From: Octopus bimaculoides
Taxonomy: Eukaryota
Assembly: GCF_001194135.2 (NCBI RefSeq)
Contig: NC_068986.1
Location: 53,507,671 to 53,571,670, forward strand
Direction of reading: 5' to 3'
DNA: 64,000 nt
In this document: positions 1-46,744 of the stretch, in pieces
Position numbering within the stretch: position 1 is the first letter of the stretch
How the letters are laid out: every line of letters begins with the position of its first letter
The notes under the pieces: model-generated
Database searches by the model: none
What the model saw: only the letters and a program-made list of their open reading frames with translations
What the model was told of the DNA's origin: nothing
Made by a program: the position numbers and the translations under genes

Positions 1-3000
1 TTCCATACTCAACTACTGTGAAAACAAATACAAGTTTTATTGGTTCAAAATTTTTAGGACAAATCTTATATATAGCTTAAAAGGGTATAAAGTATATCGT
101 TGCTATTATGTTAAACTGTCATATGTCCAAATACTTTTTTTTTTCATTATTATTTTTTTATTTTTTATTTTTTGCTTGCAGTAGCTGGTTCTTTTGGTCA
201 AGCTATCGCATTTCCAGCTGCCAAGATAACAAAAATTGTCAAAGTGTAGTACAACAGTTTTGCTATGGAATGGTGAAACTATTTTTTTGTTTTCTGAAAA
301 AGCAGCATTTTGGACTTGCAACACTTTTGCATAATAGCACCAATATGCAATTGGAGTGATGTGAAATAAAAGAGTTATTTCTTTAAAACTTAAAAAAAAA
401 GAAAAAGAAAATGTACTTACAATATTTTACTAATATATCAGTGTATCAGAGAAACTTCAGAGATTTGCATTTAACATAAGTGCCTTTGAGAAATTTCTCA
501 GAGAAAATACTACAGCTAGTGCCATTCTATGTTTGTATACACATTACATACCAGCATTTTAATTTAATGCTGTTTCAAGTGTGCATGTTGATTCAATTCT
601 AGCCTGTCTAGGTTTTGCAAAAATCTGCAAATGTTTTGTTTCCTGATCACTATACTAAATTATAGTACAGCTTGTCTCAGAACACCTGGGGGTATTTGTC
701 AAATTAGACCAAAACACCATGTTTAGCAGTCCAGTATTCTGCTCAAAGCCTTGTGGGTTTAACACAAAAGCCTCTGAAAAGATTGAAACAAATATTACAA
801 CTAGTGCAGATCTATATTTGTATATACACACTGTTATATACACAGGTATTTTAATCTAAAGCTATTTCACGTGTGTATAAATATTTAACTCATGTTCTCC
901 AAAACAAAAAAAATTCAGAAACTAGAATATAGCTGAAGTGTTGACAAAACTTAATTTGTAGATACTTAAAATTATTACTTAGAATAATTGTGAGAAATAT
1001 CAAAAGAAAAAAAGAAAAAACTTATCCCTCAAAAAACTCAATATGACAAAATAAAGACGTCTTAGGACAATTTTGAAAGCTTATAATTAGCTGGGTTCAT
1101 TCAGTGAAAAGAATATATATATAATGTTAAATCTCTGATAAATCTAATTAGAGACTAATTAAAAAATGAGAAAAAATGTGCAATTAGTGATTGATTCAGT
1201 GAGAGAGTGCTTGCAATTAAAATATTTTTAACTCCATTTAAATCATATCATTCAAGACTACAATTTTATAGTTTATGTAATAGTACAATATAGCGGTTAT
1301 AATTGTTTAAAACATCTGAGTTTACTGGTATTTAATTACTGACATTTCTGAGACTGAAACATTAACTGTGCTGGAAATGTATTTTAAATGATTTTTTTTT
1401 TATTTATCCTAAGGAGCTATCAGTGTAGTGTAAAACCATATAATCAGTATAATTGAGGGGACGTGAAAATAATCATTTCTAATTTAGGCACAAAGTCAGC
1501 AATTTTGAGTAAGGAAGGACTAGTTGATTAAACTGACCCCAGTACTTAATTGGTACTTCATTGACCCTGAAAGGATGAAAGCATGGTTGACCTCATCAGG
1601 GTTTGAATTTAATGTGTAAGAACTGGAGCACACACTGCAAAGCATTTCCCCTGCAGCATTCTAATGCCTACCATTTTGTCACCCTTTTGATATGGAAACA
1701 AACATTGCAGTTCATGTATAATTTAATTCCAATTCCAAACTATTTTACCTCCTCAAAATTGCAATACAAAAAGAAAGAAAGAACAAACAACAAAATTCAA
1801 GTGATGGAGAGGGATAAACAATCTCAATTTATAAAGGTGGAAGGAGAAAGAAAAAAAAACAACTGTCTTCAAAACCAATAGTCTAACCAGTGGTGAAAAT
1901 TTTTTTTATACATAAACTTGAATATATTCTGGTTTTTAAATGTAAGTATAAAGAACAATAACAAAAAAAGTAATCAGAAACAAAAAGAAATTTGAAGCAA
2001 TCATGCTAAACAATTCAGTTTAAAAAAAAACCCAAAAAAACTCGCAACCCTCTAAAGCCATGTTCAAGAAACAACCAACATCCAAAATTTTAAGACCATG
2101 CCAAAGCCAAGATCTCCAAACATTTGGAATATTCCTTAATTGAATGCAAAAGTCAGTGAATTTTTTTTACTATAAATCTTTATAAAAAAAAAAAATCACT
2201 AATTGCTTCTAGTGTAATATACAAGATCTAATGAGTGAAAAAAAAAAAAGTTCCTAATAATATAATTATTCAGTAACTAATTATTATAGACAACAATCAA
2301 CTAAATAGCCAACTTCACATTATGAAGTCATAATTTTTGTATTGTATATTTCAAAGTTGATCTCAAAGAATATTTTAAAATATAAAATAAAAATGATTAC
2401 TTAAATGCTCCATAGAAGTATGAGCAACACTTCTATATTAATCAGAAAGAAAACTTGTTTGATGCCAAATCAGAGAGGGGCCCAATTAATTCAAATGTTA
2501 TTAAGCAACTAAAGCTATGCCAGCAATCATAAAATTCTTGATGTTTAAAGGAGGTGTGTGTAACTGAAGAGGAACATGTAAAACAAGCAATAAAGTCAAT
2601 CTTATAAGCTTCTGCAGAACAAGTTTCATGCCAATATTCTACTCAAAATGCTATAGAAAATGCAGCCGAATAATTAAAGCTATTTATTTTACTCAAAGTA
2701 TTTTTTAGAATTTTTCTGCACAAGTGAGAAGCCTGGCTAAGGGAATTTTTGAAATAAAAATTTAAATATGGTTAACTTCTCTAAACAATTATAGGAGCTA
2801 GTGGCTTACCACTTATTTGTATAACAAATAAAAATATTACATCTTTCTGAAAATGATTTTGTAAAAATTCTTCTGTATTTTGTACCAACTGAAACTAAAA
2901 CAAAATGAAAAGAATCTGCATGCATGTAACAACACATTCATAGTGGTAATATGCAGAAGCTACACTATATCACCTCCCATTGCTACACAAGAACAAGCTA

Positions 3001-4575
3001 TAGTTGAAAGGTTTCTCATAGGACAGAGATACCTCCAGATCACTAATAAATGTAGGTCAAGTAAAACTGATGTGGCTAATGCGACATCAGCAACAGCCTC
3101 CAAAAATATCAACTTTATGAAGTATAACATTAAAGCAAGAACCATCAACAGTACTATTAGTTGGAATACACAAGTATTATCTTACAAGAAATACAGCAAG
3201 CTGGAATACTTCTACACTTCTGATAAAGAATATTAATATACAAGTTCAGCTAAAACTTTCAGCAACTGCAGGCTTAACAAGCCTGTTATTGTTTTTCTGA
3301 CAGATACCCCCACTCCACAATCAAAAAATACTGAGGAGAGGTCAAAGCCATCTACAAAAACAATAGCTTTAATATGTTTGAGCTATATATGCAAAACTCC
3401 TACTTGTTATTGGATTTAAATTTACACTAAAGCCATTAATGTGCTTAAATAAACATTTCTTTATGCAATACTCTTGGAAAGCAAGAAAGTTCTCAAAGAC
3501 ATAACTAAATTCTAGTGCAAGCTAATGATACTGTTAAAGTATGCAAAATCTTTATACCAGTTCAAAAGTTAATGCTAAAGCATTAACAAAATAAGCTTTC
3601 CACTTATAAAGAGCAATTTAGAGAAAAAAAAAACGTGCACATGTATACACATGCTGGTACATGTTAAATATGCATGCACACATTTGAATTAGCTTCTTCA
3701 CATACTAAACCGAAAAACATTGTAGTAAGTTCAACCTTTTCAAAAATTAAGTTTAAAAGTGTGAAGAGATTCATCTAATTTGAGCAGTCATACTAATTTT
3801 ATTTCAAGACAAAATTTAGATCTATTAACTAAAACAAATCGAGTTAATCTTAAGGTAAGTATTAAGTTATTGTTTAGAAATAAAGAATAAAAGCATTTTT
3901 CTTTAGACTAATTAAAAATATATAAAATTTACATTATGCATCAAAAAAGCTCTCTATTAAGGAATAAAATAATATAATTAGACAAAGACCATACATATAA
4001 GTTATCTATATACTCTCTCCTTGTCTATCATACACATATGAGAAATTATTTTTATAACAAAGTAGTAAAGTATGATGGAAGAGATGGAAAACTACAAAGG
4101 AAATCTTAAGGCCAAATCAGAATATATTCAAATATATATAAAAAGTATTTGTTTTCCTTTTTTCAATATAATATATTTATTTAGTTAAAAAATAATTCAT
4201 GGAAATTACATACATAAAAAAAAAGATCAATTACAGTTATAGGCTGTAATTATGCACACTGGTTAAACTAAACTTTTAGCTTGATGACATGAAGGATAAT
4301 ACCATTTGGATAATAAATAGGTTTGATAGAAAGTATAGACAAAAAGGGGTGAAAAGAAAATCCTACATAATATAAACATTTTATAGCTATCACAAATAAA
4401 AAAAAAAAAAAAATTTAAAGGAGAATTTTTTTAAAAACAGTTTGATGGCACTGAAGAACTTGCAAAGAATTATTCATTCTCTATACCAAGATTTCCTCCA
4501 CATTATAAAGAATGCTTTCTTGCAGAAGTCTAAGATTTTAACCAGTTGGTAATTTAACAACTAAAAATGTGATCA

Positions 4576-4611
<36 letters not shown>

Positions 4612-5083
4612 CATATATACACATACGCACATATTCAAACTGAATACCCTAAGTCAACAGCAAAATTTAGTTCAGTTATTGGACATTATACACTTCACAT
4701 TTTATCTTGAAATATGGACATATTTTCACATAATATTTAACAAAAATTCATTAATATTGTAAAATTCAACTAAATAATCTAAAGCTCGAATTTACAATTC
4801 ATAAATGCTCTTTTGTAAATATAAATATGAAAATTTGTATTTAAAAATTGCTTGATTAATGCATTTAGGAAATGATTAAAAGTAAATCAGGTTTAAAAGA
4901 AAAAAGTTAATTGATACTGGAGAAAGCATTCTCATAATTCTTTTGGGAGCATTCCAACTTTGAACAGAACATAAGCCATTATTAATAGAAAGAGTTGTTC
5001 AAAGAAAGTAATTTTACCCAACCAAGAAGGAGAGCAGAAGAGAAAGCATCATTGGAAAACCAGACTAATGAAAAGTAACAAAC

Positions 5084-5101
5084 CTGCTTCACCATTTTGT
5101 C
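5084..5101 (-). CDS. CLTC: Candidate 18-nt microexon of clathrin heavy chain (GQNGEA)
   Basis: Minus strand reads catcttcttacttacAG | GACAAAATGGTGAAGCAG | GTttgt: canonical AG/GT, pyrimidine-rich acceptor, length 18. Phase 1 to phase 1 matches the exon 2 donor and gives G|GA CAA AAT GGT GAA GCA G| with no stop. No transcript evidence was available. Confidence 0.6.
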
Positions 5102-5899
5102 CTGTAAGTAAGAAGATGTCACATGTTTCATAAATGAAGAACTAACTTCAAAACTCTATGAAATCACTTTGTTGGTTTGAACCAAACATTATGTATGAGA
5201 GAATTAAAAAAAAAACACTAAAAGCAATAATGAAAAAAGTGCAAGAAGCTTAGGGCTTAAAAATTTAAATTATATCGCCTCATAAAGTGGACAAAAAAAG
5301 ACTGAAATAAAAAGTATAAGCATTTTCCTTTGTCAGTGTTCAATAGGTGTTCACTATGAAAAAAATAAAATCAGGCACCTAAACAATGATGAATAAATGA
5401 AGAAATGATATTAATATTCATGTTGATAAGATGTCTGGTCATAATTCACAGAACACTAATTTTTAGACTACAATATAAATAAATTTAATAAATCAAAAGA
5501 GAAAATGCTGTAACTTTGGACTATCTAAAAACTGTTGAGAACAGAATTTTTAAGCTTTAACAGTGACTGTTGGAAACAGAATACACTATTCCTAAAAAGA
5601 GAAATTGCAGAATTAAAAAAAAAGATTAACCGTTTCACTGCCATTTTTCTATGTTTACATGGTTTTCTTTTACTTGCCAGTTGGAAGAATTCGTTTCAAC
5701 ACCAGATGACATTACTGCTAACCCCTTGCCTTTAAAGTAGATAAAGGCTTGTGCTAAGATTTGTACTTAAGGACCATGTAGTTAATAGTCTAGTAGCTTA
5801 AATGTAAACTCCTTTTCTTCTTGCTTTCTTTTCTTTGTTGTAAATTTTAATGACTTATAAACTTACAGTATCACATTTAATAAGAACATTTAATATGGC

Positions 5900-6160
5900 C
5901 AGCCCATTATAGCTTTGTGTGGTGGTATTCTGCGACAATGTCCTTCACTCCACACAAAGCTACGATGGGCCAGTCATGTTGCAAAGTTCACAATTGTTGG
6001 ACATGTGCTGTTGTCAAATGGTACCTGCACAAACAGAAGAGACCACTCAGAAGACCTTCAATCAGGTAGGAAGAATTATTTAAGAAAAATGTTTGGAACA
6101 ACATGGAGGAGAATCTCAAGAGGATGAGGGGAATAATGCAAATGCTGTGCCCAGTGGACT
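5900..6160 (+). mobile_element. RTE-clade LINE, decayed 3' ORF fragment
   Basis: Translation includes KLRWASHVAKFT...FGTTWRRI, resembling the RTE C-terminal (R/K)WAGHVAR...W motif. Frameshifted. Confidence 0.55.
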
Positions 6161-6646
6161 CAGCACCAGACAGCCTGGTTGATCCAGGTGATTTAACATG
6201 AAGCTTTAGGTTGGTTTTGTAACATTACATATTAAATCAGTTAAGAAAATTAAGGAAAACCAATTACTATATAAAATATAGTAAACTTGTAATATCATTT
6301 AAATTTATAAAAGCAACATCCAATTTCAAGCTTACAAAATCAGTTATTAAAAGACTTTTGTAATGACAGTTCTCAATGCAGCAAACTTCAATATTTTATG
6401 AAGAATAAAAAGATAAATAGTACTTATACTATAGACATTTTCATTCTTCATAAAATATTTAGTCTGTACCTACTGCACAGCCACCCCAATTCTTGAAATT
6501 AATGTAAAAATATGTAACAGCTCTATACTATCATCAGCAAATGTGACACCAGCACTCCTGAGGTCAACACATAATTTGCAAGGCTAAGTTGCCGTTCAAT
6601 CACAGTTGGAAAGCAAACTTCTTAACCACATAGCTATGCCTATATA

Positions 6647-7501
6647 CGAGAACTGATCAATAAGTATCTGGACTATTGCCATAGCAATGAAGCTAAAGCA
6701 TACAGAGTAAAGCCGCTTGGCACAGATTGACCTTGAACTCTTCTGTACATGCGCACTAAGTTTTAACATTCTAGCTCACTTCTGCTGTTTGCAGTAATGT
6801 GTGTTGCATGTGATAATCGCATTGATCATTACAAAGAAAGTTGTCATGATGATATCTGCTCAGAGGCTGACGGAAAGTTGCAGAAAGTGTATGGAGAGGA
6901 GTGTATGAGCCGCACACAAGTGTACGTGCCGTTCAGACATTTCCACAATGGCCAAAAAAATGTAGTTTGTGATGAATGTTCTGGGAGACCTGCAACCAGC
7001 AGAACTGAGAAAAACATCACAGATGTGCATACAGCTGTGAGGGGAAATAGTTGAATCACTATCTGTGAGTTATCAGAGGAAGTGCAGATTATTTATGGTT
7101 CAGTTCAGTCCATTATTGCTGAAATTGGGTAGGAGGTGTGTGTCTGCCAAGTTTGTGCCAAAACTGCTTTTAGCTGACCAAAAAGACACTCGGTTTTCAG
7201 TTGCACAAGATCTTGATTGTGTCGAGAAGGATGAAAACATCTGAGCAGGTATCATCAAGCTTTTGGCAAAATTTGATGCAAATTCTCTGCTCAACTTTCT
7301 CTGTCATGGACAATGCGACGATCACACACTACTCACCTTCCTCCCAAGCACTGCTGTAAACAGTAGAAGTGAGTGAGAATGTTAAAACTTAGTGCACATG
7401 CACAGCAGAGTTCAAGGTCAATCTGTGCCAAGTGGCTTCACCCTGCATGCTTTAGCTGTGTTACTATGGGAACAATCTGGATAATTATTGATCAGACCAC
7501 G
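6647..7501 (+). mobile_element. Mariner (Tc1/mariner) internally deleted element
   Basis: TA at 6645-6646 and 7502-7503. Inverted repeats of ~150 bp start cgagaactgatcaataagtatctggac / cgtggtctgatcaataattatccagat. Internal transposase N-terminus (KLQKVYGEECMSRTQVY...SGRPATSRTEKNI..., then AKFVPKLL, a WVPHEL-like linker). DDD domain deleted. Confidence 0.9.
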
Positions 7502-7951
7502 TACATTATTTAAAGCAGTCTAAAATCCAGAGTTCTATTTCACTGTATGACAATCGAGTTAAATGTTTTCCACTGTAGCTTTGGATTTACCATTGCTTTG
7601 CAAGTAAAGTTTGGTAGAGGGAAACTGTGCAGGAAGTCTATCAAATGAAATAAATAAAAACCATTTTGAATTAAAACGATAGCTGAGAAACTTATTCTAT
7701 CAATTGAGTATAATTAACTGGAAAACCTCTTGAAAGCAGTGCTTCAGGATGGCAACAGTCCAATGACTAGAACTTGTAAAGTGTAGTTATACAAAAAGAG
7801 GGAGCAAGTGATTTAAAAAAGAAAAAAAAAAAGCTGACTAAATTAAAAATGCAAACGTTGCGTTATGGAATATCATGGTATAAAATATTTCTTTAGGGAT
7901 AAATAGAAAGTAGAGATGACAAATTCAATAGAATGAGTAGAGAGAGCAACA

Positions 7952-7988
<37 letters not shown>

Positions 7989-8000
7989 GTGTGTGTGTGT

Positions 8001-8609
8001 NNNNNNNNNNNNNNNNNNNNNNNNNNNNNNNNNNNNNNNNNNNNNNNNNNNNNNNNNNNNNNNNNNNNNNNNNNNNNNNNNNNNNNNNNNNNNNNNNNNN
8101 NNNNNNNNNNNNNNNNNNNNNNNNNNNNNNNNNNNNNNNNNNNNNNNNNNNNNNNNNNNNNNNNNNNNNNNNNNNNNNNNNNNNNNNNNNNNNNNNNNNN
8201 NNNNNNNNNNNNNNNNNNNNNNNNNNNNNNNNNNNNNNNNNNNNNNNNNNNNNNNNNNNNNNNNNNNNNNNNNNNNNNNNNNNNNNNNNNNNNNNNNNNN
8301 NNNNNNNNNNNNNNNNNNNNNNNNNNNNNNNNNNNNNNNNNNNNNNNNNNNNNNNNNNNNNNNNNNNNNNNNNNNNNNNNNNNNNNNNNNNNNNNNNNNN
8401 NNNNNNNNNNNNNNNNNNNNNNNNNNNNNNNNNNNNNNNNNNNNNNNNNNNNNNNNNNNNNNNNNNNNNNNNNNNNNNNNNNNNNNNNNNNNNNNNNNNN
8501 NNNNNNNNNNNNNNNNNNNNNNNNNNNNNNNNNNNNNNNNNNNNNNNNNNNNNNNNNNNNNNNNNNNNNNNNNNNNNNNNNNNNNNNNNNNNNNNNNNNN
8601 NNNNNNNNN
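8001..8609. other. Assembly gap
   Basis: N-run. Others at 11616-12364, 20938-21568, 29341-29350, 45523-45565, 47559-47568, 52876-53407, 55023-55152. Most abut simple repeats. Confidence 1.
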
Positions 8610-9375
8610 GCGATGCGTCCTGCCCAGCTCTTCGAAACGCCGGTGTTAAAACGGGGGTAGCTGATGAAGAAGAATGTTCTCTATGTGGCTTGTGTGTTTT
8701 CTCGTCTACGTTTTGTTTGCAATGTCCTGTACCCAGATATGCACCTATACATACAGGTGGATGTCGGTATGCACATACCTGTACGTATATATGCATATAC
8801 TCATTTACTATTTGTTTTTATATATATATATATATATACACACATACATATGGTTAAAGCATACAAATCTCAGCCCAATTCACTGAATTAGCAATAGGCA
8901 GCATAATTCACTATTGCATGCAGCAGTTAGTTTGTACTGGCGAGTTCTATTTCAATTGTGTGGAAATCACAAGTGGTAGACTGCTACTATTCTATCTAGA
9001 GGGGATAGGAAGAAAGATTTATTTCACAATAATGCAATAGAAACCATAGAAAAGCACTAGCAATTTGGAATGCCAAAGTTCATGAAGGGAAAAGTAGATG
9101 AAGGTGGGAGAAAGTTACCTATCCTTTCTTCTAAAAAAAAAAGTTAATGAAATTTTGTTGAAGTGTTTCTTTTTTTTAAAATAAAAATTGTCGCTAAGAT
9201 CATGATTTACATCATTTCTCTGTATTAGTTATTTATAGTCTGTGACATCATTGAGGCCTATTTTGTGTTTTACTCAGCTTTTACTGCTAGCTTAAAGCCA
9301 TTATATTGTTGAATGAAGCTTTTTGAGATCCTTCTTTTGCACCATTATTTTTCTCTCCCCTCCAGATCAAAAGTT

Positions 9376-9972
9376 ATGGAAAGAAATGAAGAAAAGCACT
9401 AAGTTGAAGATCTTGTTTTGGATCCAAGAAGAAACAAACGACAAGGAAATGTTTCTTACACTCCCAAGAAGAAGCATAAGATTGTGGATGATCAATTTCT
9501 GGAGTTTTTGGAGTTTCGTGAAAACAAATTGACCTTGGAGCCTTACCAATGAGAAGCTGGGTATTCTCTCTGTACAAGCCAAATTTCGTCATGAACATTT
9601 TGTGCTGCACAGTAATAAGAGATTTTGGCAAATGATGAAGAATGCAGATGCCATGAACCGTACTGTGAATGTCATGAGGTCATCTTTTCTCCACTGCATC
9701 ATTCTGATTTGAAGCTGACTGAGCTCATATGGGCCACTGTCAAGGGATAAGTGGGAAGACAGTACACCACAAACACCACTTTCGAGCAAGTGCTGGCACA
9801 ACTGTATACATCATTTCAGAATCTGGAGAACAAAGCAGTCCAAGGATGCATTAAGAAAGTTAATTCTCATCTTAATAAGCTTTATGAGCATATTAGAGCC
9901 ATTGAAGATTAAGTCAGTGATGGTGAAAGTGATACTTCAGGCAGTAGTGATGAAGATAACCTCAATAAATGA
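9376..9972 (+). mobile_element. IS630-Tc1-mariner-type transposase relic (pseudogenised)
   Basis: 9673-9972 translates HEVIFSPLHHSDLKLTELIWATVKG*VGRQYTTNTTFEQVLAQL...acidic tail, matching the ITm motif xxPPxxxDLNPIExxWxxhK around the catalytic E. Stops are present and no TIRs were confidently found. Confidence 0.7.
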
Positions 9973-10613
9973 TAAAATACACTACTAATGATTCTGGTTT
10001 CTTTTTCTTTTCCCTCAAAATCAAAAAAAAACATTCATAACTTTTGAACCAGAATTGCAAAACTACTGAACTATAGTTTATTCTACTCATCAAAGCTATA
10101 TTTATCTCAATAACATCAAAGCATTGTGTTACAAAAACAGCTTCAATGGTGTCGCAGACTGTTAAAAAAATTTTTTTTTTTAATTTTCATTTAACAAGGA
10201 AACTTCATAAAACATTTTAATGTAAAAATATTAATTTGTTGGATTAAACATATTGAAGCATTTTACATTTACTGTGGAAAATGTTTTTGAATCATCATTA
10301 ATAATCATTGATCTAGCAGTCATAGAATTATCTTGAACGTGAGAAGGGGCTGAGCTCCTTTCGAGTTTTGGATGGTTTGATTGGGCTGGCACACTGGAAG
10401 GCTGTGCCAAGATCCAGTTTGATTTGGCATGGTTATCTACAGCTGCATGCCCTTCCTAATGCCAACCACTCTGAGAGTGTAATGGGTGCTTTTACGTGCC
10501 ACAACTGCTCGGCTTGATAGATCGTCTTCTCAAGCACAACATAATGCCAAAGGTCTTGGTTATTGTGCATTATTTACATTCAATGGATGTTTGTCCTCAT
10601 CTTGTTTGTTGTT

Positions 10614-10659
10614 AACACAATGTTTTGGCTGATATACCCTCCAGCCTTCCACATGTGTC
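10614..10659 (-). ncRNA. Degenerate minimal type-I hammerhead ribozyme (left arm)
   Basis: Minus strand GACAC-ATGTGGA-A-GGCTG-loop-CAGCC-AAAACA-TT-GTGTT. Stem I (GACAC/GTGTT) and stem II (GGCTG/CAGCC) are intact, the catalytic core is mutated. Confidence 0.45.
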
Positions 10660-10930
10660 TTGGGGAAATTTCGAACCTGGGTTCTCACTCCTAAGGTATT
10701 TTTCGATATTATTATTGTTCAGGTCACTGCTTGGAATTGAACTTGGAATCTTGGGGTTAGTAGCCCGCGCTCTAACCATTATGCCATTATACCTGTGGGC
10801 ATAGTGGTTAAGAGCACAGGCTATTAACCCCAAGATTCCGAGTTCGATTCCAAGCAGTGACCTGAACAATAATAATGATAACATCGAAAAATACCTTAGG
10901 AATGAGAACCCAGGTTCAAAATTTCCCCAA

Positions 10931-10971
10931 GACACCTGAAGTAGGATGGAGGGTATATCAGCCAAAACATT
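10931..10971 (+). ncRNA. Degenerate minimal type-I hammerhead ribozyme (right arm)
   Basis: GACAC-CTGAAGT-A-GGATG-loop-CAGCC-AAAACA-TT versus the core CUGANGA..stem II..GAAAC GUH. Carries core substitutions and has lost the stem I 3' strand. Confidence 0.45.
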
Positions 10972-11184
10972 AACAACAAACAAGATGAGGACAAATATCT
11001 GTTCAATGTAAATAATGCACATAATTCCTCATGTCTTAAATATAGAACTGTCTTGGTCACTGTTATAGAACTTGGGTCCTTATTGGTTTAAGTATTTAGA
11101 TATATTAAATACCATGTGTTCAGTTTGCATTTGAAATTCAAGCTGAAAATTCTGTTTACTTCCAAATCTTGGGCTTCATGGAAG

Positions 11185-11470
11185 CAATGACCAAGACCTT
11201 TGGCATTATGCCGTGTTTGAGAAGAAGACCCATCAAGCCAAGCAAAATCGCAGTTGTGGCAGATACCAATATACCAGTGTCACACAAATGAGACCCATGC
11301 CAGTGGCACGTAAAAGCACCCATTATACTCTCGGAGTGGTTGGCATTTGGAAGGGCATCCAGCTAGAGAACAATGCCAAATCAGACTGGATCCTGGCGCA
11401 GCCTTCCAGTGTGCCAACGCAGTCAAACCATCCAGCCCATGCCAGCATGGGCAATGGACGTAAAATGATG
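11185..11470 (+). mobile_element. Short repeat homologous to the 3' UTR of the RTE LINE (5'-truncated LINE or LINE-tailed SINE)
   Basis: Shares gaagggcatccagct...cccatgccagcatgg...gatgatg with 59960-60380. Confidence 0.75.
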
Positions 11471-12659
11471 AACTGACCCCAGTACCTACTGTTTTGAAGC
11501 CTGGTACATACTCTATCGGTCACTTCTGCTGAACTGCTAAGTTGCAGGGATGTAAACACACCAACACTGGTTGTGAAGCAGTGGTGGGGGACAAACAAAG
11601 ACAAATATATATATANNNNNNNNNNNNNNNNNNNNNNNNNNNNNNNNNNNNNNNNNNNNNNNNNNNNNNNNNNNNNNNNNNNNNNNNNNNNNNNNNNNNN
11701 NNNNNNNNNNNNNNNNNNNNNNNNNNNNNNNNNNNNNNNNNNNNNNNNNNNNNNNNNNNNNNNNNNNNNNNNNNNNNNNNNNNNNNNNNNNNNNNNNNNN
11801 NNNNNNNNNNNNNNNNNNNNNNNNNNNNNNNNNNNNNNNNNNNNNNNNNNNNNNNNNNNNNNNNNNNNNNNNNNNNNNNNNNNNNNNNNNNNNNNNNNNN
11901 NNNNNNNNNNNNNNNNNNNNNNNNNNNNNNNNNNNNNNNNNNNNNNNNNNNNNNNNNNNNNNNNNNNNNNNNNNNNNNNNNNNNNNNNNNNNNNNNNNNN
12001 NNNNNNNNNNNNNNNNNNNNNNNNNNNNNNNNNNNNNNNNNNNNNNNNNNNNNNNNNNNNNNNNNNNNNNNNNNNNNNNNNNNNNNNNNNNNNNNNNNNN
12101 NNNNNNNNNNNNNNNNNNNNNNNNNNNNNNNNNNNNNNNNNNNNNNNNNNNNNNNNNNNNNNNNNNNNNNNNNNNNNNNNNNNNNNNNNNNNNNNNNNNN
12201 NNNNNNNNNNNNNNNNNNNNNNNNNNNNNNNNNNNNNNNNNNNNNNNNNNNNNNNNNNNNNNNNNNNNNNNNNNNNNNNNNNNNNNNNNNNNNNNNNNNN
12301 NNNNNNNNNNNNNNNNNNNNNNNNNNNNNNNNNNNNNNNNNNNNNNNNNNNNNNNNNNNNNNNNAAAAGTATTCTTTAAAATATTCCTAGTTTTATACAT
12401 TTCATTTGAGGAAGTAGTAAACATTAATTACTAAATCAAAGATGATTACTTCAGATTGTTCATCATTTAACACGTTTTCCATGATGGCATGGGTTAGACA
12501 GTTTGACAAGAGCTGGTGAGGCAGAGGACTGTCATGCTCTGTTGTCTGTCTTGGTATGATTTCTATGGCTGGATACCTTTCTAATGGCAGCCACTTTACA
12601 GAGTGCAGTAGGTGCTTTTTTTTTTTTGTGGCACCAGCACTGGCAGGGTCACCGAGCAA

Positions 12660-13430
12660 CTTGCAAGTCAAAGTCCCATTGACTGGAAGGAAGTAGTATT
12701 GAGGGAAGTGGCTTTGTGCTAGTTGATGAGAGATTAAAAGAATAATAGAGAGATAGAGATAGGTGTCTTGCTGTAGCTCCATACTCCAACAAGGATATGC
12801 CAGTTAGAGAAGAAGGGAGAAAAAGAAACTTAGAAAGATACAGGTAGAGAATGAGAAAGATGGTGGATATGTCAGGAAATACCCTCAAAGTATGGGGGTG
12901 AATGTGTGTGAATATAGGTGAAGTGATACAGAGATTGGACTGAGTGAATGGGCAGAGGAGACAGATGAAATAGTTTCATAAGAATGTGAGGAGAGATGAT
13001 TAGCTGACATACAGGTGACTGTAGTAGTTGATGGTGAGAGACACAGGAGTGGTTCAGACGTGGTTATGTTAGATATGTTAGGGCAGTGAGAGTAATAACA
13101 AATAAGTGAGATGTTAAGGATAGAGTATAGCAGAGGGGAAATAGCATGACTTGAGGAGAATGATGCTGAGGTGGGGGAAGAAAGAGATAGGTAACAAAAG
13201 GAGGGGATGTAGTATGTGCCTATTCTTCTCTCAGGTGATTATGGTAGCCAAATAAATATCCGACAGAAAAGTGATGAGTGTTAGAGAAAGAAATGTGTGA
13301 GTGTGTAAGCTTGACCGGGGGGAGGGGGGGAGAATAGAGGTGGAACAATCCAATACTACTCTCCGTAACAAGCAAAGCTTGTGCTGAGCCTGCCAATGTC
13401 AAGGTCAGATCTATAATTAACATCCTACAA
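12660..13430 (-). mobile_element. Heavily decayed CR1/L2-like LINE 3' region
   Basis: Pyrimidine-rich minus strand with remnants resembling the CR1/L2 C-terminus (...HIHPHT..FP.. segment), joined to a SINE-type tail at 12470-12660. Clade assignment is weak. Confidence 0.4.
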
Positions 13431-16400
13431 ACCATATTTGTACATCCCTTTGATTAGCAAGCATTTTCAAAGAATACTTAGGAATTATTAGTGGGACATG
13501 AAAATTCGCAAATACATAGAAGAAAAAAAAAAATTGAATAGTTACTTAGAGGTTTCATTTTTTTACCAAATTAATCCATGCTACTGACACATACACAAAA
13601 GGGTATCCAATTTAAAATATTTGAATGCTTTCATTTTAGTATATTCAGGTGAGCTTTTATTTTTTATAACACAGATACTTAAGTCATCCAAGTTAGACTT
13701 TATGAATTAGCCAACTATAATTGATGGAATTGTAATTTACAATGGAAAGAGATATAATATGATCAATTATCTATTTTACATCCTTAATCCAGATAAATTA
13801 CTTAACACCATCAGTGATGAATAAATATGAATATTCCTACATAACTGAAATGAAGATAAACATAGGTGGTGAATTAGCAGAGTCACTAGTTGGTTTTTAT
13901 TTTGGCACCTTGTATTCTGAGTTTTAACCTCACTGAAGCTAACTTAGCCTTCTGGAGTAAATAAAGTAGTGGAGTGGAAGAAATGTTAAAGCATCAAGCA
14001 AGATGTCTTCTATATTTGTTCCAGCTCTTTGTATTCAGAATTCAAATCTTGCTGAAGTCTTAACTGGTAGACCTAATCAGATGCTCAGATTAGCACCTTT
14101 ACCTGACCCTTGTGTACCTTCAGTCGAGTCCACTTTGTTGCAAGCATTTGAGTAAGGTCTCCAGTTTGAGGATAACTCATCCTCCTTCCTACCAGTTTCG
14201 GAGGTCTTGTTAAGAATCAAGTGAAGTAACCTTCCTGCCTGAGAAATTAAAAAAATAATGCTCCTGTTTATCTTGAATTCATTGAGGGGGGAAAAAAAAG
14301 TCCATTCCAAATTTATGTGAGAAATAATTATTTATCAATAAGATCTGTCTAAGCTCCTTTTCAATTTCCTTTCTCTTAAGGAAATTGAAACTTAGTAAAG
14401 AGAAAGGTATTATACAAATAACTCATGACAGCTTTAAAGTTGAAAAACAATCAAAGAACAGGTCATGAAATCGAAACATCCTTTCCCTTAATAGATTATA
14501 TAATGTACTATAAATAAGACAATGTGTTTATGTAGGGGTAGAGGTGGAAATAAGCAATGTCAATTTTTTAATGTCAATAGTCTAACCTTAACCCATTTTT
14601 GCCATGATTTTCTAAGATTGGATTAAAAGATTAATATTTTTCACTTCAGCGTCAGAACAACAAAATAATCTATATATAATCCAAGTTATTCATATATTTC
14701 CAACATTTTAATTGGATTACCTCTTCAGTCATTTAACCGATTTCAATTTATTATTTGTCTTCAGATGATGAGTGAAAACACTAAATAAAAAATGAGGAGA
14801 GATAAATATCCCAAAAGATATTCACATAATGTAGTCAATATAGAATATTTCAGTTAACTAGAAATTGTCACTGAAAAAAATATTTCCATGGTTGTTTCAT
14901 AATTGCTGAGGTGTAATACTGTCTTGTTTTTAAACTAGTTTAAAGTCAGGTTTTCAAAATAAATACTTTTACTTATATCTCTCCTCCTGCAGTGTGGTTA
15001 AAAGAACCAGTCTTAAATTTTTGTAACTCAAAAATTATGTCAATGAGTCATTGTTGTCTCATCATCCTTGGGAGGAAAGAAAAACAAAAACATTCATGTT
15101 TTTCTTAAGCTTCAGCAATACAGGTCAAATGAAATAACTACTACTAAAAGCCGAAATCTAGTTATTGATTTATAAAAAAAATAATTCTCTCATTAGCAAA
15201 AAGACTGAAGTTTACAAAACCAGATATGTTTCTCCCTGGTTTAACATCCATTTTCACATTGTAGCATGGAGTGGAAGTTTTTATACAAGGTTATTTCTCT
15301 TTAGCTCTGTACTGTTATAACTGTAGGGGATTAACTAAGAAATAGACAAATATAACATTATGTAACACGATTTTCAAACCTAAAGAATCCCTCTCAACAC
15401 ATGGCTGTGATGCTCCCTGACTCCTCTTGCTTATGATCAGAGATGCACACAATGTCAACCACTAAGAGACATGCTCAAGTGGTTATGGTCAAACAACTGT
15501 ATTAAGTAGAATATTTGCTATAACAATAATTCTGCTTCAGTAACTCAGTGCTGAATATGCCTGAAATGTTATGGAAAATAGGTCAGTTTCAAAACATTGT
15601 CCCTCTTTTTGCTAAGTTGGTAACAGTAATAGTGACAGTGGTCATGGCTTAGTGGGTGATCAGCAAGAAAAGCCCATTGAAAGAAAGTGTTAGAGAGATA
15701 GACAGAGAGAGTTGGTTGGAGTGATGATGACAAAACAGAAACAAGTGAATTGAACTGATAGTGATCATCATAATAGAGGTGATGGTAAGCAAGTGGTGGT
15801 TGGAATACAGAAAATAGTTTACATGGTTACATATATTCAGTGTTTCCATTAACAAATTCTATAATGTTGGGGTTAAAAACTAAGTACTAACAAACAAATA
15901 TAGGAAAACCTCAAGGCAGACATTCATTTAACCATGAAATACACAAATCTTCCTAAAATTACACTATATCAATCTAATAAGAAGGGCACATTGAATAATA
16001 CAACAGTGTGCCAATGCAATCATCTCATAGCATATAGTCTAGTTTAACAACCAGTTTTGCAGCCCTCAAGTTTATACAGCTATATTAACTTTTCATAATA
16101 GATGTGAAACGTTCACATTTCAGACAGTATTACACCTCACTAATTATAAAACAACCTATGAGCTTCTATCCAAGACTGCTCTAAATATTACTTGTACCCT
16201 AAATAAAATTTTACTACTCAATCTTTGCATCAATTTGATATTTTCATCATCATCATTTTCATGCTTGCAATAAGTCAGATGGAATTCAAAGAGGAAGATT
16301 TTCTGCAACCAGATGTTCTTACTGTCACCAACCCTCATATATTTTGAAGCAATTCAATATTTCTCGAGGACTAGACATTGATTGTTTGATAGTATTTAGA

Positions 16401-17064
16401 ACTATCATGCAATGTCAAGACAAGGAGGAATACACACACACGTGACAGGCTTCTTTCAATTTCTGCCAACAAATTCCACTCACAAAGCTTTGGTCAGTCC
16501 AGGGCTATAGTAAAAGACACTTGTCCAAGGTGCCACACAGGGGGACTGAACATGAAACCACAGGGTTGGGAAGTGAACCCAAAACCATGAGGTTGCTGGG
16601 TAACATCTAATACCAACATAATCACTACATACCTGAATATGGTTGTTACTTGCCTTTTCATACCTAGAGTTTCTAAAAGTAATGAAGTTTTCAATTTTAA
16701 TCATTTCAGGGTTCTATAATCAAATCCATGTTGCAGCAATTGCATTACTTAGGTGAGATATTCTGCATACCAATGCTTCGCTGCCAGTACATGCCAAAAC
16801 GTAGCAGTTATATTCCTCTCCACTCTCAATCACACTCTAAAGGTTTAAAAAGGTCAGTAGATGACTTGTTCGGGATACACTATTCTAAAGGGATTAAGGA
16901 AGATGAGATGTGCTATAACTTGAACATTTGGTTGAGATTCCATTTAGTGTTCTTGAAATTGGACTCATGTGGTCTGAACTAAATAGAAACAACAGAGGTC
17001 CACAAGAAATTTCACTGTATTTTTCATGCTCACGTGGTTTACATTAAATATATGCAAAGACCTT

Positions 17065-19215
17065 TTGGGTGAAGTCATTAGCGGCTTCAGGTTAGGATTC
17101 TAAGAAACAAACCAATCTAGAAAAGGATTTGGAAGCTTAAGGGTCCTCTGAATAGTCAGAGATTTAGAGATATCCTAATTGAAGCATTTGATGAGTAGGA
17201 GGAAGATTTACAAACATGTAACAGAGGACAAATGGAAGTTCCTATGGGACAACTTACTGAGGGCTACAGACCAAATTTGTGGTTGGTGCAAAACCCCAAC
17301 CAGACCAAGGGTGGGGTGGTGGAACAGAATAGTAGAGGGCCATTAGAGTGAAGAAACAGGATTGGAAGAGTGGTGGTAACCAAGAAATATATCAGTAGCT
17401 AGAACAGAAACTAGGAGAGGTATATTTAGCTAGGAGAGAAGCAGACAGAAGAAGTTTGCCAATGTTCTACAGCATGACGACCAGGGGATTGAGGTGTTTT
17501 GGCTTGCAAAGCGATACGTCAGAGAAACATCATGATGTTGTAGGAGAGAAGTATGTTCACAAGGATGACAGTCCACTTAAAGAAAGAGGCTGGGAAGCAC
17601 CACTATCAAAGGCTGCTAAATGTAGAAAATGCATGGGAGAAAGAGACTGTCTAATGTGAACCCGACAGAGGGATCAGCTATCTGAATCAGCAGTAGCTTG
17701 GTAGATAAAGCAGTTAAGGATATGAAGACAGAAAGTCCTTGGTCCATCAGGAATCACCACCGAGATGCTTAGAATATCTGGTGGAGTGGAATATGGCCTT
17801 GATACCAGTATAGTTAATCAGGTTGTCCATGAGGGAATCATACCTGATGATTGATGTAGCATTATAGTCAACTGCTATAAAGGTAAAGATAACACCTTAG
17901 ATAGAAATAATTGCAGAGGTATCAAATTACTGGACCAGGCGATGAAAGTTAGGGTCATGGCTCAATTAATAAGAGAGTTAGCCTAGATGCGATAGCTTGG
18001 TTTTGTGCCCGAGAGAAGCACTACTTATACTATCTTCATGGTAAGGCAACTACAAGAGAAGCATTAAGCCAAAAAATAAACCTCTATTTGACTTTTATCA
18101 ATGTGGAGGAAGCCTTTGACAGGATCTCCACCACTCCTTTATCTGGTGGTCAATGCAGAATCTAGGGATAGATGTGTGGTTGGTGAGAGCTATACAAGCC
18201 ATGTACAGGAATGTTGTCAGTAAGGTGAAAGTTAGCAATAAGTATAGCAATGAATTTAGTGTAGGAGTTTACCAAGAATAGGCTCTCAATCTCCTCTTGT
18301 TTATCATTGTCTTCCAGGCCATAACAGAGGAATTTAAGACTGGCTGCCCTTGGGAGCTCCTTTATGCTGAAGAGCTTGTTCTTAAAGCAGAAACACTAGA
18401 GAAGAAATTTCAGATGTGGAAGCAAGATTTGGAATCAAAGGACCTCAGAGTTAATTTAGCTAAGACCAAAGTCCAAGTAAATAGAACAGACAAATCCCTT
18501 CAGAAAGATGGCTTTGGTCGATATGTGGAAAAGATGCAAGTAGAAATTCAGTAAGGTTTACCCAGTACAAGCTATGGACACATATGAGGTATAGCATCAT
18601 CCCAGGAAGGTTAACAGAGAAAGTAGCTTTTGTGTCAGATGTAAAAGTGCAATAAACATTAAGAATGTACAGAAAATAGACTTTCTTGAATGTCTGGGGA
18701 GATCCTTAGAAGTAGATAGCTTCCTAGGCAATCAAGTTAGTAGTGGAGGAGGATGCTATAGAAGTGTAGTTGGTAGAATAAGAACAAGTTCAGAGAGCCA
18801 ATACCTTTGTTAGTAACAAAGGTGTTCTCCCTCAGAGTGAAAGACAGATTGTATGATGCTGTGAACAAACTATGCTACATGGTGAAACATAGGCTGCAAT
18901 TACAGAGGACATGTGAAAACTCGAAAAGAACAAATCCAGCATGCTCTGCTGGATGGATAATGTCAGTGTGATATACAACTGAGTGCAAATGATTTAAGAG
19001 AAAAATTGGGTAGAAGAGGCATTAGATGTAGTGTGCAAGACAGAGGCTTGCACTGGTATTGTCATGTGATGCTTATAGATGAAGACTTCAGCATAAAGAA
19101 ATGCTGATCACATATTGTGGAAGGAACCTGTGGAAGGAGTAGGCCCAGGAAGATGTGGGACGGAGTGGTGAGAAATGATTTCAGATGTTGAGCTTCAGAG
19201 TAGATGACGAGTCCG
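17065..19215 (+). mobile_element. RTE-clade LINE, decayed (RT domain)
   Basis: Frameshifted segments NLLRATDQICGWCK, SPGPSGIT.EML, LFIIVFQAITEEFKTGCPWELLYAEELVL (YADD motif decayed), DLRVNLAKTKV, and C-terminal GRPRKMWD. Confidence 0.9.
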
Positions 19216-20576
19216 CTGCCCTAACCACTGGGCCATTGCACCTCCACAGAAGGGAGTTATAGGGCTGGAGGGAACAAAGCAAAATTCAGCATTTTAACTC
19301 ACACTATGTCATATTTGCATGGATCAGACCGAGTTCACAGATTTTCAATGGCTTGATGCCTATCCTGTTGCCAACCCTTACCCATTTTGAAGTAATGTAA
19401 TATTTCTTAAAGGACAGAAATGTTCTCACAGAATATTGGGAAATAACACTGCTTGTATGACAGTAACAGTCATTTTACAACTATCATGCAATGTCAAGAT
19501 GAGGAGACACAAACGTACATACACACACACAAATGTATATATACTTATGACAAGCTTCTTTCAGTTTCTGTCCACCAAATCCACCTACAAAGCTTTGGAT
19601 GGCCCAGAGCTACAGTAGAAGACACTTGCCAAGGTGCCACTCAGGGAACTGAACTCAGAACCACATGGTTGGGAAGTAAACTTCTTATCACACAGCCACA
19701 CCTACATCTATGTAAAAATTATTAGAGTTAATATTTGTTGCAATATATAATACTTGTGATACAAGTGGTCAGCAATCTGGTAGGTCGATACAGAACTGCA
19801 TCAGGTTTGATGTTAAAAATGAAAGAATGGTGGAGATACATACCTACTACAACAAACAATTTGTTTATTGCTTTACACCAACTATTCTCCTGTTTTCTTT
19901 CCATAGGTATTTGCCTCATCATTTGCACACCACAAACTTCTAACCATTTACTTCTTAAAACGCCAAAACCCAACAACCCTAGCTGTCCCATAAAATTTTT
20001 AAATACCATGACCAACTTTTGTCCTCTTTGGTAACAGTCTCATACATCCATGACTTTGCCTCAGCAACTCTCACCCACCAGTTCCATTTTATATCATCAT
20101 CACTTAATGTCCTTTTTCCATGCTGGCATGGGTTACACAGTTTGACAGGGGCTGACCAAGCATAAGACAGCACCATGCTACACTATACTTCTCTGCTTCA
20201 AACTTGTCATTACTTATAATTGCTTCTTCAGTGAATTGAATAAGCTATTGGTATGAGGATGGGTCACGAAAACACTGACATATTTGATCATCTAGAAAAC
20301 TAGATATTCATCAGGTTCACTCTAGAGCTAAATAAAATGTTATATCGACAGCACTGGTGTCACGTCTCATACTTGTGAGCAACTCAATTCTCTTCCCTCA
20401 CTAATTCTTTAACACCTGCTTTGGATTTCCATTCCACCGTCTCTGACATTTCCACAAATTTTTATATTGAAATATGTTTCAATTGCACACACATCAGCTC
20501 TATGATCCATCATTTACAAACTTATTCCCAACCATCTTAATTTCTCTGTCCTACCTCACCAGTACCACAACTATTT

Positions 20577-20578
<2 letters not shown>

Positions 20579-20640
<62 letters not shown>

Positions 20641-20670
20641 TAGAGAGAGAAAAAGAGAAAGAAAGAGAGA
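20579..20670. repeat. (GA)n microsatellite
   Basis: Visible run about 80 bp downstream of the exon 2 donor. Others: (TG)n ~4580-4605, (CT)n(GT)n ~7955-8000, (AAT)n ~48548-48635, (ATT)n ~54938-55022, (CT)n ~63197-63305. Confidence 0.95.
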
Positions 20671-20747
20671 TGCAGCTATAAGAGCAAAAATTCCCGCTGT
20701 AAGTCACTGGTTTGTTCCACATTTGTATATAAAGACAAGATACTGAC

Positions 20748-20937
20748 CTTTTAATGCAATAACTTTACTTGCTGGGTTCATGATGGCAGAGTCAGCGGAG
20801 ATAGGCCGGCGAATTGGGTTGGTGGCATCATTTAAATCAATAATGACAACCTGAGCAGTTTCTCCAACCTTTTCTCTTATACATATGTATTTATCTGATT
20901 CCATAGTAAGGGTACTAAACCCAATATTGGAGGCATT
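20748..20937 (-). CDS. CLTC: Clathrin heavy chain, exon 2 (5' end hidden in assembly gap)
   Basis: Translates to [63 protein letters not shown] + G | GTCAGT, near-identical to the clathrin terminal-domain beta-propeller, with a phase-1 donor as in human. About 18 nt (LQNLGI-equivalent) and the acceptor are expected inside gap 20938-21568. Confidence 0.97.
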
Positions 20938-25340: not shown

Positions 25341-27699
25341 GTGGCTAATCAATGAAGGAACTCCTATGCGGTCATTTAACCTGCTAAAAATAGTATTCAA
25401 TTGTCCACAAATGACAGTCAGCCATCATAGAAAATGATGTGCTGGACATAATCCTGGGTTCTGTGAACACGAGTAAAAGACTGGTCACAACTGACATGCA
25501 TTTGATCATCGGTCTGTTCCATCAGAACTGACCTGGGAATATGTCTGTGGTGACCTGGAAAACTATTATGAACTGAACAGAGAAGATAGACAACCACTAC
25601 AATTCCCTTAATTTCAACCCTATTTCTAATCCTACCAAATGGCCAAGCAGTTTTTAAAGAGTAGCCCTCTATACCTAGTTTTCTCACTGAACTTAAATTT
25701 CTGTACTTGAGATTCTATTAAACAAGCTTTAGACGAATATCATGTCTGTTTTCCATGCTGAGTTGTGGTTTGCTGGGTCCCTCATATAACATATCACCAC
25801 TTGTTTCAATCCTGTGTCATCTAATTTGTGAGGCCCAAAGATCCTTCTTCACTCTATCTCATAGCTAAGAAATCATTAATAGAAGTAACAGCAGTTTGCA
25901 AAATGATAAACTTGTTTCAATAGAAATATATATCATCTGCAGTTCCACATACTGGTATAAAATCTATATCCATAAGTAACAGTCATATTTGGTGAGATTT
26001 ACTTGGAAATGAGTCTGGAGTTACTTTGTTGGTATATAATTAAATCTTAGTTATTATTTTGTGAAACGCTCTGAGTTTTAGAAATGTAATTCACTATATA
26101 AGCTTCTAAGTACCATAAAATATGCCTTTTGGAATAAATCATTATGTCTTAAGTCATTCTAACAACATAACCTACCCCACTATCTTGCCAGCTGTGCAAC
26201 TATCTGTTATTACAACAGCAAAGCTAGTAGCAGAAGAATGCTAAACAGCCTTAGAAAAATACTGCAGTTCACTGTAGACACACTACAAATACAATATTGA
26301 TTTACAAATTATTTCTGCTCGAGAATAAAATAACTGTACTCAAGAACAGTTTTGTATGAGTGTCAGGACATGGATTTGTTATAAACCAATAATACAACAT
26401 CAACTGTTTTTAACATATAATGATATGAAAAAGACTGATAACACACAGAACCTGAAAGTAGTGTTGTTTTATTATTGATTGTTGCACTTCGGACATTTCA
26501 ATTTGACATTGTCAGGCTTTCTATGAAGCTAATTATGAAAATTTGCTAAAAAGAAGGCATGGGATTCACAGGACTTTACTAGATTTATAACAAAAAATGT
26601 AAATTTTGGAAAACTAGCTAGAAGGTAAGAATATCTAAATATTTCTATGGTCTGTTTTATAGAACGTATAATTAACATTCTAAAATTGGACCAATCTTTG
26701 ACATTTGAAAAATATATAGAATTTTAATTTTCATAAACTAATTTAAGCATCTATTTTCTTCCTAAAATTATACAAGTAAAATAGTTTTTCCTTAGTTTAT
26801 AATGTGATCAACTCATAATACATGACATTTCTTTTAGCCATCCTTTTTAGCATAAAATATTAAGCTGATCAATTTATAAGATTGCCTTTATGTTTGCGTT
26901 ACCAATCAAACATCGTATAGTATTCTTGCATATTTAAATTAAAACCATTAGTAGGGAAAGTAAAATTTTGTATCAATCAACACCATTTTCTTTTGTTCAT
27001 GGAAAATATTAAAATGAGATATGAATGTCAGCAGTTGGAAAATGTATAAACTTGGCAATTTCTTAATGTATGTAAAAAAAAAAAAAATTTTTTAATGACA
27101 AAGCAAGTATTTTATAAGATTAATTAATTTACCAGCATCCATAAATCACTATATGGGTGGTGACTAACCTTAAAATCTGTTTTGTAAAAGGTTTCATTCT
27201 GCTACCTTAGCTAACTCTTATCAATAAGATAGCAAATTTGAGAAAGAGCAGTTAAAAAATAAAAGTTGAGTAATTCAAGAGTTGGGGCTTACAAATCCTA
27301 AATTTTCTTATTCTCAAAATACAAACTGGTTCCAACAGTGCCTGAATTTGCAGAACCAACTAACTGACCACTTCCATCAACGTCAAAGCTAATGAATTCT
27401 ACTAAAGTTACACGATTATATTTACCATATCCTCAAGGTCATTTTTGAAATTTAAAATTTTATAAAGATTATATTTCTAAAACCTCTCTCTTCTTAGGCA
27501 GTACAAGATATAGGAATTATATTTGTGAATATGAAGCATAAAAAGAAAAAACCTTAGGTCAATAACAACCATGAATGCAACAAGCAACTGGTTAGCCTAC
27601 CTTTCCAAGCAAACTGATTACAAAATGTGGATAAGTAACACCAAAGATGAAATGATTTGGAGACATTTAGTGAAGTTAGACATTCTTTTCCATAAATAA

Positions 27700-43694: not shown

Positions 43695-43706
43695 GCCACC
43701 TAGTGA
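43695..43706 (-). promoter_or_regulatory. CTCF-like motif in intron 1
   Basis: Minus strand TCACTAGGTGGC matches 11/12 positions of the CCASYAGRKGGC core and lies in the CpG-retaining promoter-proximal intron. Motif match only. Confidence 0.25.
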
Positions 43707-45183: not shown

Positions 45184-45224
<41 letters not shown>

Positions 45225-46699: not shown

Positions 46700-46744
46700 C
46701 TGTAAATGCTCTTGAAAACGTATTGGAAGCAATTGAGTCGCCAT
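46700..46744 (-). CDS. CLTC: Clathrin heavy chain, coding exon 1
   Basis: Minus strand reads ATG GCG ACT CAA TTG CTT CCA ATA CGT TTT CAA GAG CAT TTA CAG | GTAGGT = MATQLLPIRFQEHLQ, matching the clathrin heavy chain N-terminus (human MAQILPIRFQEHLQ). The phase-0 intron sits at the same position as in human CLTC. Confidence 0.95.

Follow-up and report, generated by a model that had tools for sequence, protein, structure and literature searches.

A stretch of 18 nt (GACAAAATGGTGAAGCAG) on the minus strand of the window, the 64,000-nt piece of Octopus bimaculoides DNA analysed here, was predicted from its letters to be a microexon of the clathrin heavy chain gene, which runs on the same strand. 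Its position (5101..5084) in a long intron raises two questions. First, is it a genuine exon, or one of the AG...GT pairs that a long intron may hold by chance? Second, which exons does it join, and in which part of the clathrin terminal domain would its six residues lie?

A cassette microexon in octopods and cuttlefish

On the minus strand the sequence reads ...catcttcttacttacAG|GACAAAATGGTGAAGCAG|GTttgt, with an acceptor (cttacttacAG) and a donor (GTttgt) that are both canonical (AG/GT). The exon is in phase 1-1, and a leading G together with the 18-mer gives G-Q-N-G-E-A in the clathrin heavy chain frame. Its length, its acceptor, its donor and its phase match to exon 2 are all present as had been predicted. 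The coordinates of the features are collected in Table 1.

The six residues are found in the annotated proteins of other octopuses. Isoform X1 of O. sinensis and O. vulgaris (XP_029637476.1 and CAI9724428.1; P0177, 1698 aa) reads ...AVYHWGME-GQNGEA-GDSQPLKMF..., isoform X2 (XP_029637477.1, 1692 aa) differs by the absence of GQNGEA alone, and isoform X4 (XP_029637479.1, 1679 aa) has neither GQNGEA nor a second insert of 13 residues; both inserts are therefore annotated as alternative. A frame-preserving, alternatively spliced 18-nt clathrin microexon encoding GQNGEA is thus seen in the Octopus isoforms, as predicted. The peptide is identical in O. bimaculoides, O. sinensis and O. vulgaris. At the same junction, Argonauta hians (GAB1609867.1) has GQNGEP, and the Sepia pharaonis models (CAE1279180.1) and Logan RNA-seq transcripts have GPDDHT, the cuttlefish cluster being 96% identical to octopus X1. 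The exon had been thought likely to be missed by annotation. It is instead a CDS exon in the RefSeq/GenBank models of these five cephalopod species, and as a feature it is therefore already known.

In all complete cephalopod models and cuttlefish transcripts the insert follows HW[GS]ME, between exons 3 and 4, and not between exons 2 and 3 as first proposed. By alignment, the insertion point corresponds to E133|G134 of human CLTC, about 50 residues downstream of the proposed K83|A84, where none of the cephalopod clathrin heavy chains examined carries an insert.

The exon structure of Sepia was obtained by mapping a cuttlefish transcript (L003) onto the 97-kb Sepia genome locus (L002). The Sepia junctions read atgtaacattttcttacttacag|GACCTGATGATCACACAG|gtttgtttta and those of the octopus atgtgacatcttcttacttacag|GACAAAATGGTGAAGCAG|gtttgttact; 21 of the 23 nt upstream are the same, as is the GTTTGTT donor, and the exon itself agrees at 11 of its 18 positions. 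When the 64-kb window was compared with the 97-kb Sepia locus by BLASTN, three collinear matches were obtained, namely exon 1, exon 2 and window 5124-5077. The last of them (81% over 48 nt, E = 7e-5) is the sole match to the Sepia locus outside the exons, which puts its conservation above the intronic background. Orthologous 18-nt exons at the same junction in Argonauta and Sepia likewise agree with the expected conservation among other cephalopods. Across the three genera the peptide diverges, while position, length, phase and splice signals have been kept.

Inclusion and skipping were assessed at the level of RNA-seq contigs in cuttlefish and from RefSeq and GenBank gene models only in octopus. 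Among the cuttlefish Logan contigs, L003-L007 include the microexon and L008-L011 skip it. With 5/75 full-length contigs, inclusion is a minority form in these assemblies; all five come from run series SRR82816xx, and the contigs with no insert come from other series. The six- and 13-residue inserts are found in four combinations, giving proteins of 1680, 1686, 1693 and 1699 aa. The exon has every property of a cassette microexon: no more than 51 nt, a multiple of 3, an open frame, existence as a separate exon, both inclusion and skipping, and conserved flanks. We consider it very probable that window 5101..5084 is a true cassette exon of the clathrin heavy chain gene, orthologous among coleoids and spliced between exons 3 and 4, which adds GQNGEA at E133|G134. 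"Coleoid" here covers octopods and one cuttlefish lineage.

Table 1. Features of the clathrin heavy chain gene in the window and at the Sepia (L002) and Argonauta (L012) loci.
Feature	Position	Strand	Remarks
Window: exon 1, coding part (MATQLLPIRFQEHLQ), from ATG	46697..46744	-	donor CAG|gtaggt
Window: cryptic 14-nt piece AAAATTTAGGATTT|gtaagc	27292..27305 (approximate)	-	bridges the exon 2 gap in the NCBI model, gives VENLGF
Window: exon 2, visible part (...NASNIGF...VIALK)	20748..20937	-	ends in phase 1; 5' end cut by N run 20938-21568
Window: N run, candidate hiding place of exon 3	11616..12364	.	inside the Argonauta-anchored bracket
Window: N run, other candidate hiding place of exon 3	8001..8609	.	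inside the Argonauta-anchored bracket
Window: wider intronic block around the microexon, conserved within octopods	4883..5188	-	81% over 306 nt to Argonauta L012 37308-37595
Window: conserved 3' splice-site region	5102..5124	-	atgtgAcat, pyrimidine tract cttcttacttac, AG; 21/23 nt as in Sepia
Window: microexon encoding GQNGEA	5084..5101	-	between exon 3 (...HWGME) and exon 4 (GDSQP...)
Window: conserved weak 5' splice site GTTTGTT	5077..5083	-	U at +3/+4; same in octopus, Argonauta and Sepia
Sepia: exon 2	L002 8910-9117		208 nt
Sepia: exon 3	L002 13355-13504		150 nt, phase 1-1
Sepia: microexon GACCTGATGATCACACAG	L002 26278-26295		18 nt; exon 3 is 12.8 kb away and exon 4 is 7.1 kb away
Sepia: exon 4	L002 33432-33550		119 nt
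Sepia: 39-nt exon	L002 49592-49630		39 nt
Argonauta: microexon GACAAAATGGTGAACCAG	L012 37386-37403		exon 3 (35146-35295) lies 2.1 kb upstream; same acceptor and donor; within the 306-nt block 81% identical to window 5188-4883

Position of the insert in the terminal domain

Residues 1-107 span blades 1 and 2 of the propeller. The clathrin box lies between blades 1 and 2, the W box at the propeller centre, the arrestin box between blades 4 and 5, and the Royle box between blades 6 and 7 (Muenzner et al., PMC5182127). An AlphaFold2 model of residues 1-385 of octopus X1 has a low mean pLDDT of 61, and its secondary structure alone was used. The model has the insert (residues 135-140, pLDDT <50) in a loop flanked by strands 127-132 and 144-150, which come third and fourth after the boundary between blades 2 and 3. 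In the N-terminal β-propeller this is the outer hairpin of blade 3, where its third strand turns into the fourth. The W-box residues Q152 and I154 presumably start the next innermost strand. By propeller topology, the insert loop would lie on the face opposite the W-box entrance, and would correspond in blade 3 to the K96/K98 loop of blade 2. The original prediction had the insert beside the clathrin-box groove. It follows residue 133 in blade 3, outside the blade 1/2 groove and the I80-K98 segment, and probably lies outside all four mapped peptide-binding sites.

Given this location, the most likely effect of inclusion would be to modulate an unmapped terminal-domain contact in a subset of tissues; candidate contacts are an inter-blade groove adjoining blade 3 and the packing of the domain against other parts of the coat. 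The conserved, weak 5' splice site GUUUGU may, together with the conserved branch-point and pyrimidine region, regulate inclusion, which would lengthen a flexible, polar hairpin loop on blade 3. The splice signals are nearly constant between octopods and cuttlefish and the residues have changed, which suggests selection on a regulated loop length; what is selected may be added length in a flexible, polar loop and not any particular motif.

The main rival to such loop modulation is that the exon is real and its effect on the protein neutral, either because low-level inclusion is tolerated or because the exon acts at the RNA level, for example in removing the roughly 20-kb intron. A neutral loop agrees with the location outside the mapped sites and with a peptide that is not conserved between octopods and cuttlefish, but length and frame have been kept across this split, with 7/18 exon positions different and neither a stop nor a frameshift. 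It also agrees with the minority status of the isoform in cuttlefish, although inclusion is concentrated in one run series and not evenly spread. As for the RNA level, a recursive-splicing site is ruled out, since the microexon starts with GAC and its junction with exon 3 would not restore a 5' splice site. We regard a neutral, merely tolerated loop as rather unlikely.

The missing exon 3 and the apparent junction with exon 2

The visible part of exon 2 ends with GCA TTA AAA G|gtcagt (last base 20748, phase 1). With human and octopus clathrin protein as queries, no match to exon 3 (AGKTLQ...HWGME) or to exon 4 was found in the visible window. The missing exon 3 is 150 nt long, in phase 1-1, starts with CTGGTAAAAC and ends with GGTATGGAAG. 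Collinear Argonauta anchors bracket its expected place between window 14581 and 5486, an interval with two N runs that could hide it; sensitive BLASTN between the collinear anchors gave no further anchors to tell which of the two has the exon. Comparison with the other genomes indicates that an N gap in the O. bimaculoides RefSeq assembly has swallowed exon 3. Microsatellite tracts of (TG)n, (AC)n and (AG)n are present at window 4579-4762 and at the N-run edge near 8000, and the abutting of one tract on the N run at 8001 fits repeat-induced assembly gaps.

Exons 2 and 3 both end in a split-codon G and exon 3 is in phase 1-1, so GQNGEA is read whichever of them precedes the microexon. The apparent join of exon 2 to the microexon is an artefact of a symmetric exon 3 swallowed by the N gap, by which both the original prediction and the NCBI model were misled about the partner of the microexon. 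This O. bimaculoides model, XP_052824427.1 (P0226, 1522 aa), reads VIALK-GQNGEA-GDSQPQ, and the 50 propeller residues of exon 3 are absent. Its N-terminus reads HLQ-VENLGF-NASN: exon 1 is extended by 4 nt, a cryptic 14-nt piece follows, and the model restarts exactly at the gap edge at 20937. The cryptic piece is an annotation artefact and no part of the real gene. For annotation, the lesson of this automated model is that when a gap removes a symmetric exon (phase 1-1), the exon that follows can join the wrong partner in frame.

Several other parts of the gene and its surroundings match the related genomes. The promoter, 5' UTR and exon 1 (window 46607-47150, minus strand) are 84% identical over 555 nt to Argonauta L012 103-645, with a core (window 46899-46684) that has 83% identity to Sepia, and Argonauta shares several more conserved blocks with window 42929-46405, which belongs to the first part of intron 1. 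About 1.1 kb of sequence upstream of the clathrin gene (window 58507-59601) is 65% identical to Argonauta L012 13204-14321, which belongs to intron 1 there; this match is not collinear and is therefore probably a shared repeat or transposable element. In O. sinensis and O. vulgaris the whole clathrin heavy chain gene is about 101 kb long.

Inserts at K83|A84 in insects and other animals

The prediction had named an insect insert at K83|A84 (ALK-GKAGVE-AQKTLQ), and such an insert is indeed found in many insects. GKAGVE occurs in Papilio, Schistocerca, thrips and Bacillus, GKAGAE in the mayfly Cloeon, and longer versions in Hemiptera; by RefSeq isoforms, the insert is alternative in mayflies and damselflies. 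In the only insect-type locus examined (L001, insert at 420-450) it is contiguous with exon 2 (AAA GGC AAA GCT GGT ATT GAA G|gtaaga). It is a 3' extension of exon 2 there, so a short form from that locus would need a GC donor (AAG|GCAAAG). Elsewhere, unionid mussels have GSQ[GS]AGDGN and every amphioxus isoform examined has GSGS at K83|A84. The inserts of insects, mussels and amphioxus at this site were seen in proteins P0098, P0126, P0134/P0264, P0183/P0267, P0135, P0152 and P0111. Some teleost, lungfish and lamprey isoforms have one extra residue, D or E (ALK-D-AAK / ALK-E-AGK), and the lamprey has isoforms with and without it (P0089, P0092, P0094, P0095, P0096, P0106 and P0110).

Both the insect insert and the cephalopod microexon add a few Gly-rich, polar residues to a loop on the surface of the same propeller, and both do so at a phase-1 junction. 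The insect insert, however, belongs to the loop between the second and third strands of blade 2, adjoining the clathrin-box groove, at the junction after exon 2, and in L001 it is an extension of exon 2, whereas the cephalopod insert is a separate cassette after exon 3. The two accordingly differ in insertion point, in exon junction and, as judged from one insect-type locus, in genomic encoding. Common to both are the first Gly, which is forced by splicing, and one other Gly; with the different loop, this argues that they are not homologous, contrary to what had been supposed. Nor does the exon appear to be ancient, as had also been suggested: among roughly 250 clathrin heavy chains retrieved, the E133|G134 insert is confined to cephalopods.

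These facts bear on the reading in which the microexon lies between exons 2 and 3 and puts GQNGEA at K83|A84, beside the clathrin-box groove, as an ancient homologue of GKAGVE. Its phase does fit exon 2, and the O. bimaculoides RefSeq model does have VIALK before the insert, but that model goes on with GDSQPQ of exon 4 and not with AGKTLQ, exon 3 being absent from the gapped assembly. The join that it implies (TTAAAAG-GACAAAATG) is at odds with the complete cephalopod models and cuttlefish transcripts, where the insert comes after HW[GS]ME and never at K83|A84. Insects carry GKAGVE at that site, alternatively in mayflies and damselflies, yet in L001 contiguously with exon 2. We consider this reading of the microexon extremely improbable.

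Splice signals of the microexon

Within the conserved 3' splice-site region, octopus, Argonauta and Sepia share the invariant core TCTTAyTTACAG, and atgtgAcat is a candidate branch point, with its A at about -18 (YNYRAY consensus). UGC was not found within 120 nt upstream of the acceptor, the nearest being at -125 in octopus and -121 in Sepia, in agreement with the earlier remark that no UGC enhancer stands directly upstream. UGCAUG (Rbfox) and ACUAAY (QKI) were likewise absent over 300 nt in both directions from the microexon, in octopus and cuttlefish alike. In the ranges searched the microexon is therefore without the usual sequence marks of SRRM4/eMIC-, Rbfox- and QKI-dependent exons, including the UGC enhancer close to the 3' splice site that goes with the SRRM4/eMIC class.

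The 9-mer TTCTCTCAT stands at the same offset, -102 upstream of the microexon, in the window (about 5195-5203, minus strand) and in Sepia (L002 about 26176-26184). It is possibly a conserved CU-rich element, and alone it is not statistically secure. Two further candidates were dropped. A pseudo-5' splice site GGTAAAA, at +60/+66 in octopus and Sepia, is absent in Argonauta. A 9-nt variant encoding GQN would use an internal GTGAAG donor (PWM rank 3); the Sepia exon is without an internal GT, and so this variant is not a conserved alternative.

How readily such an exon might arise by chance was judged from the visible intron (1..20745, minus strand), which was scanned for open, frame-preserving AG..GT pairs with 3-51 nt between them. 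The scan gave 540 candidates, 41 of which are 18 nt long. With a crude splice-site PWM the microexon comes 4th of 539, at a combined 5.7 bits, its donor having only 1.6 bits; the exon 1 donor alone has 7.5 bits. By itself, the motif is not beyond chance. Comparison with the other cephalopods places it beyond chance. A chance pseudo-exon, an AG...GT pair of a long intron spuriously annotated, would account for so many comparable open candidates, the modest combined score and the weak donor, but hardly for precisely spliced cuttlefish RNA-seq transcripts that carry the orthologous exon, for splice sites, length and phase kept in three genera, or for a block that is the only conserved intronic element relative to Sepia, and we give it next to no credence.

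Comparison with other microexons

A second alternative microexon, of 39 nt, lies outside the window, and at the protein level it corresponds to human A172|Q173; it encodes QVNAENSAVTPPT in octopus and QVNAEISAVTPPT in cuttlefish, where it is the majority form (65/75 contigs). Inserts at A172|Q173 are also seen in amphioxus (alternative), in the sea urchin Lytechinus, and in Mytilus, Pecten, Haliotis and oysters, whose isoforms X1, X2 and X3 differ here. This distribution suggests an old bilaterian alternative exon in the loop between the second and third strands of blade 4. Both exons are alternative cassettes for the same domain of the same gene and combine freely in cuttlefish. They differ in that the 39-nt exon concerns blade 4, is a majority form and is phylogenetically widespread, whereas inserts at E133|G134 are seen in cephalopods only. 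Among the cephalopod clathrin isoforms themselves, the Octopus, Argonauta and Sepia models contain the same exon, with no difference in the Octopus models and a defective model in O. bimaculoides.

The c-src N1 exon is a frame-preserving 18-nt microexon by which a folded interaction domain gains a longer loop. Like N1 and the SRRM4/eMIC neural microexons, the clathrin microexon is frame-preserving and loop-lengthening, with weak splice signals and pyrimidine-rich flanks. It differs from SRRM4/eMIC exons in its lack of nearby UGC and UGCAUG in the ranges given above, and its peptide is poorly conserved, unlike that of typical vertebrate neural microexons. In the vertebrate clathrin heavy chain CLTC, exon 31, near the C-terminal trimerisation region, is likewise small, frame-preserving and alternatively spliced; it lies outside the N-terminal propeller, belongs to another lineage and is unrelated in sequence. 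Alternative splicing of exon 31 is reported to change coat organisation (PMC7480091).

Our literature searches turned up no paper on splice variants of the clathrin heavy chain that affect the terminal domain, and no papers on microexons, octopus and clathrin together; those on clathrin heavy chain and microexon returned titles on other genes or on the vertebrate trafficking-gene programme only, and one on the tissue of run series SRR82816xx gave only papers with no bearing on it. No description was found of a layer of clathrin regulation by micro-insertions in propeller loops.

Micro-insertion in the clathrin propeller

Across animals, three exon junctions of the terminal domain carry alternative or lineage-specific micro-inserts. 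We propose, tentatively and as a possibility that we hold to be doubtful, that the microexon is a cephalopod-specific, regulated change to an unmapped surface of blade 3, and that its site is, with K83|A84 and A172|Q173, one of a set of recurrent micro-insertion sites.

The clathrin terminal domain of cephalopods, a hub for adaptor docking, has at least two alternative microexons, of which the one described here is the shorter. The isoforms sit in databases and appear functionally unstudied, so that they offer a modest lead, which is not one of clathrin-box tuning. If the proposal holds, propeller loops at three phase-compatible exon junctions would recurrently take alternative micro-insertions in invertebrates.
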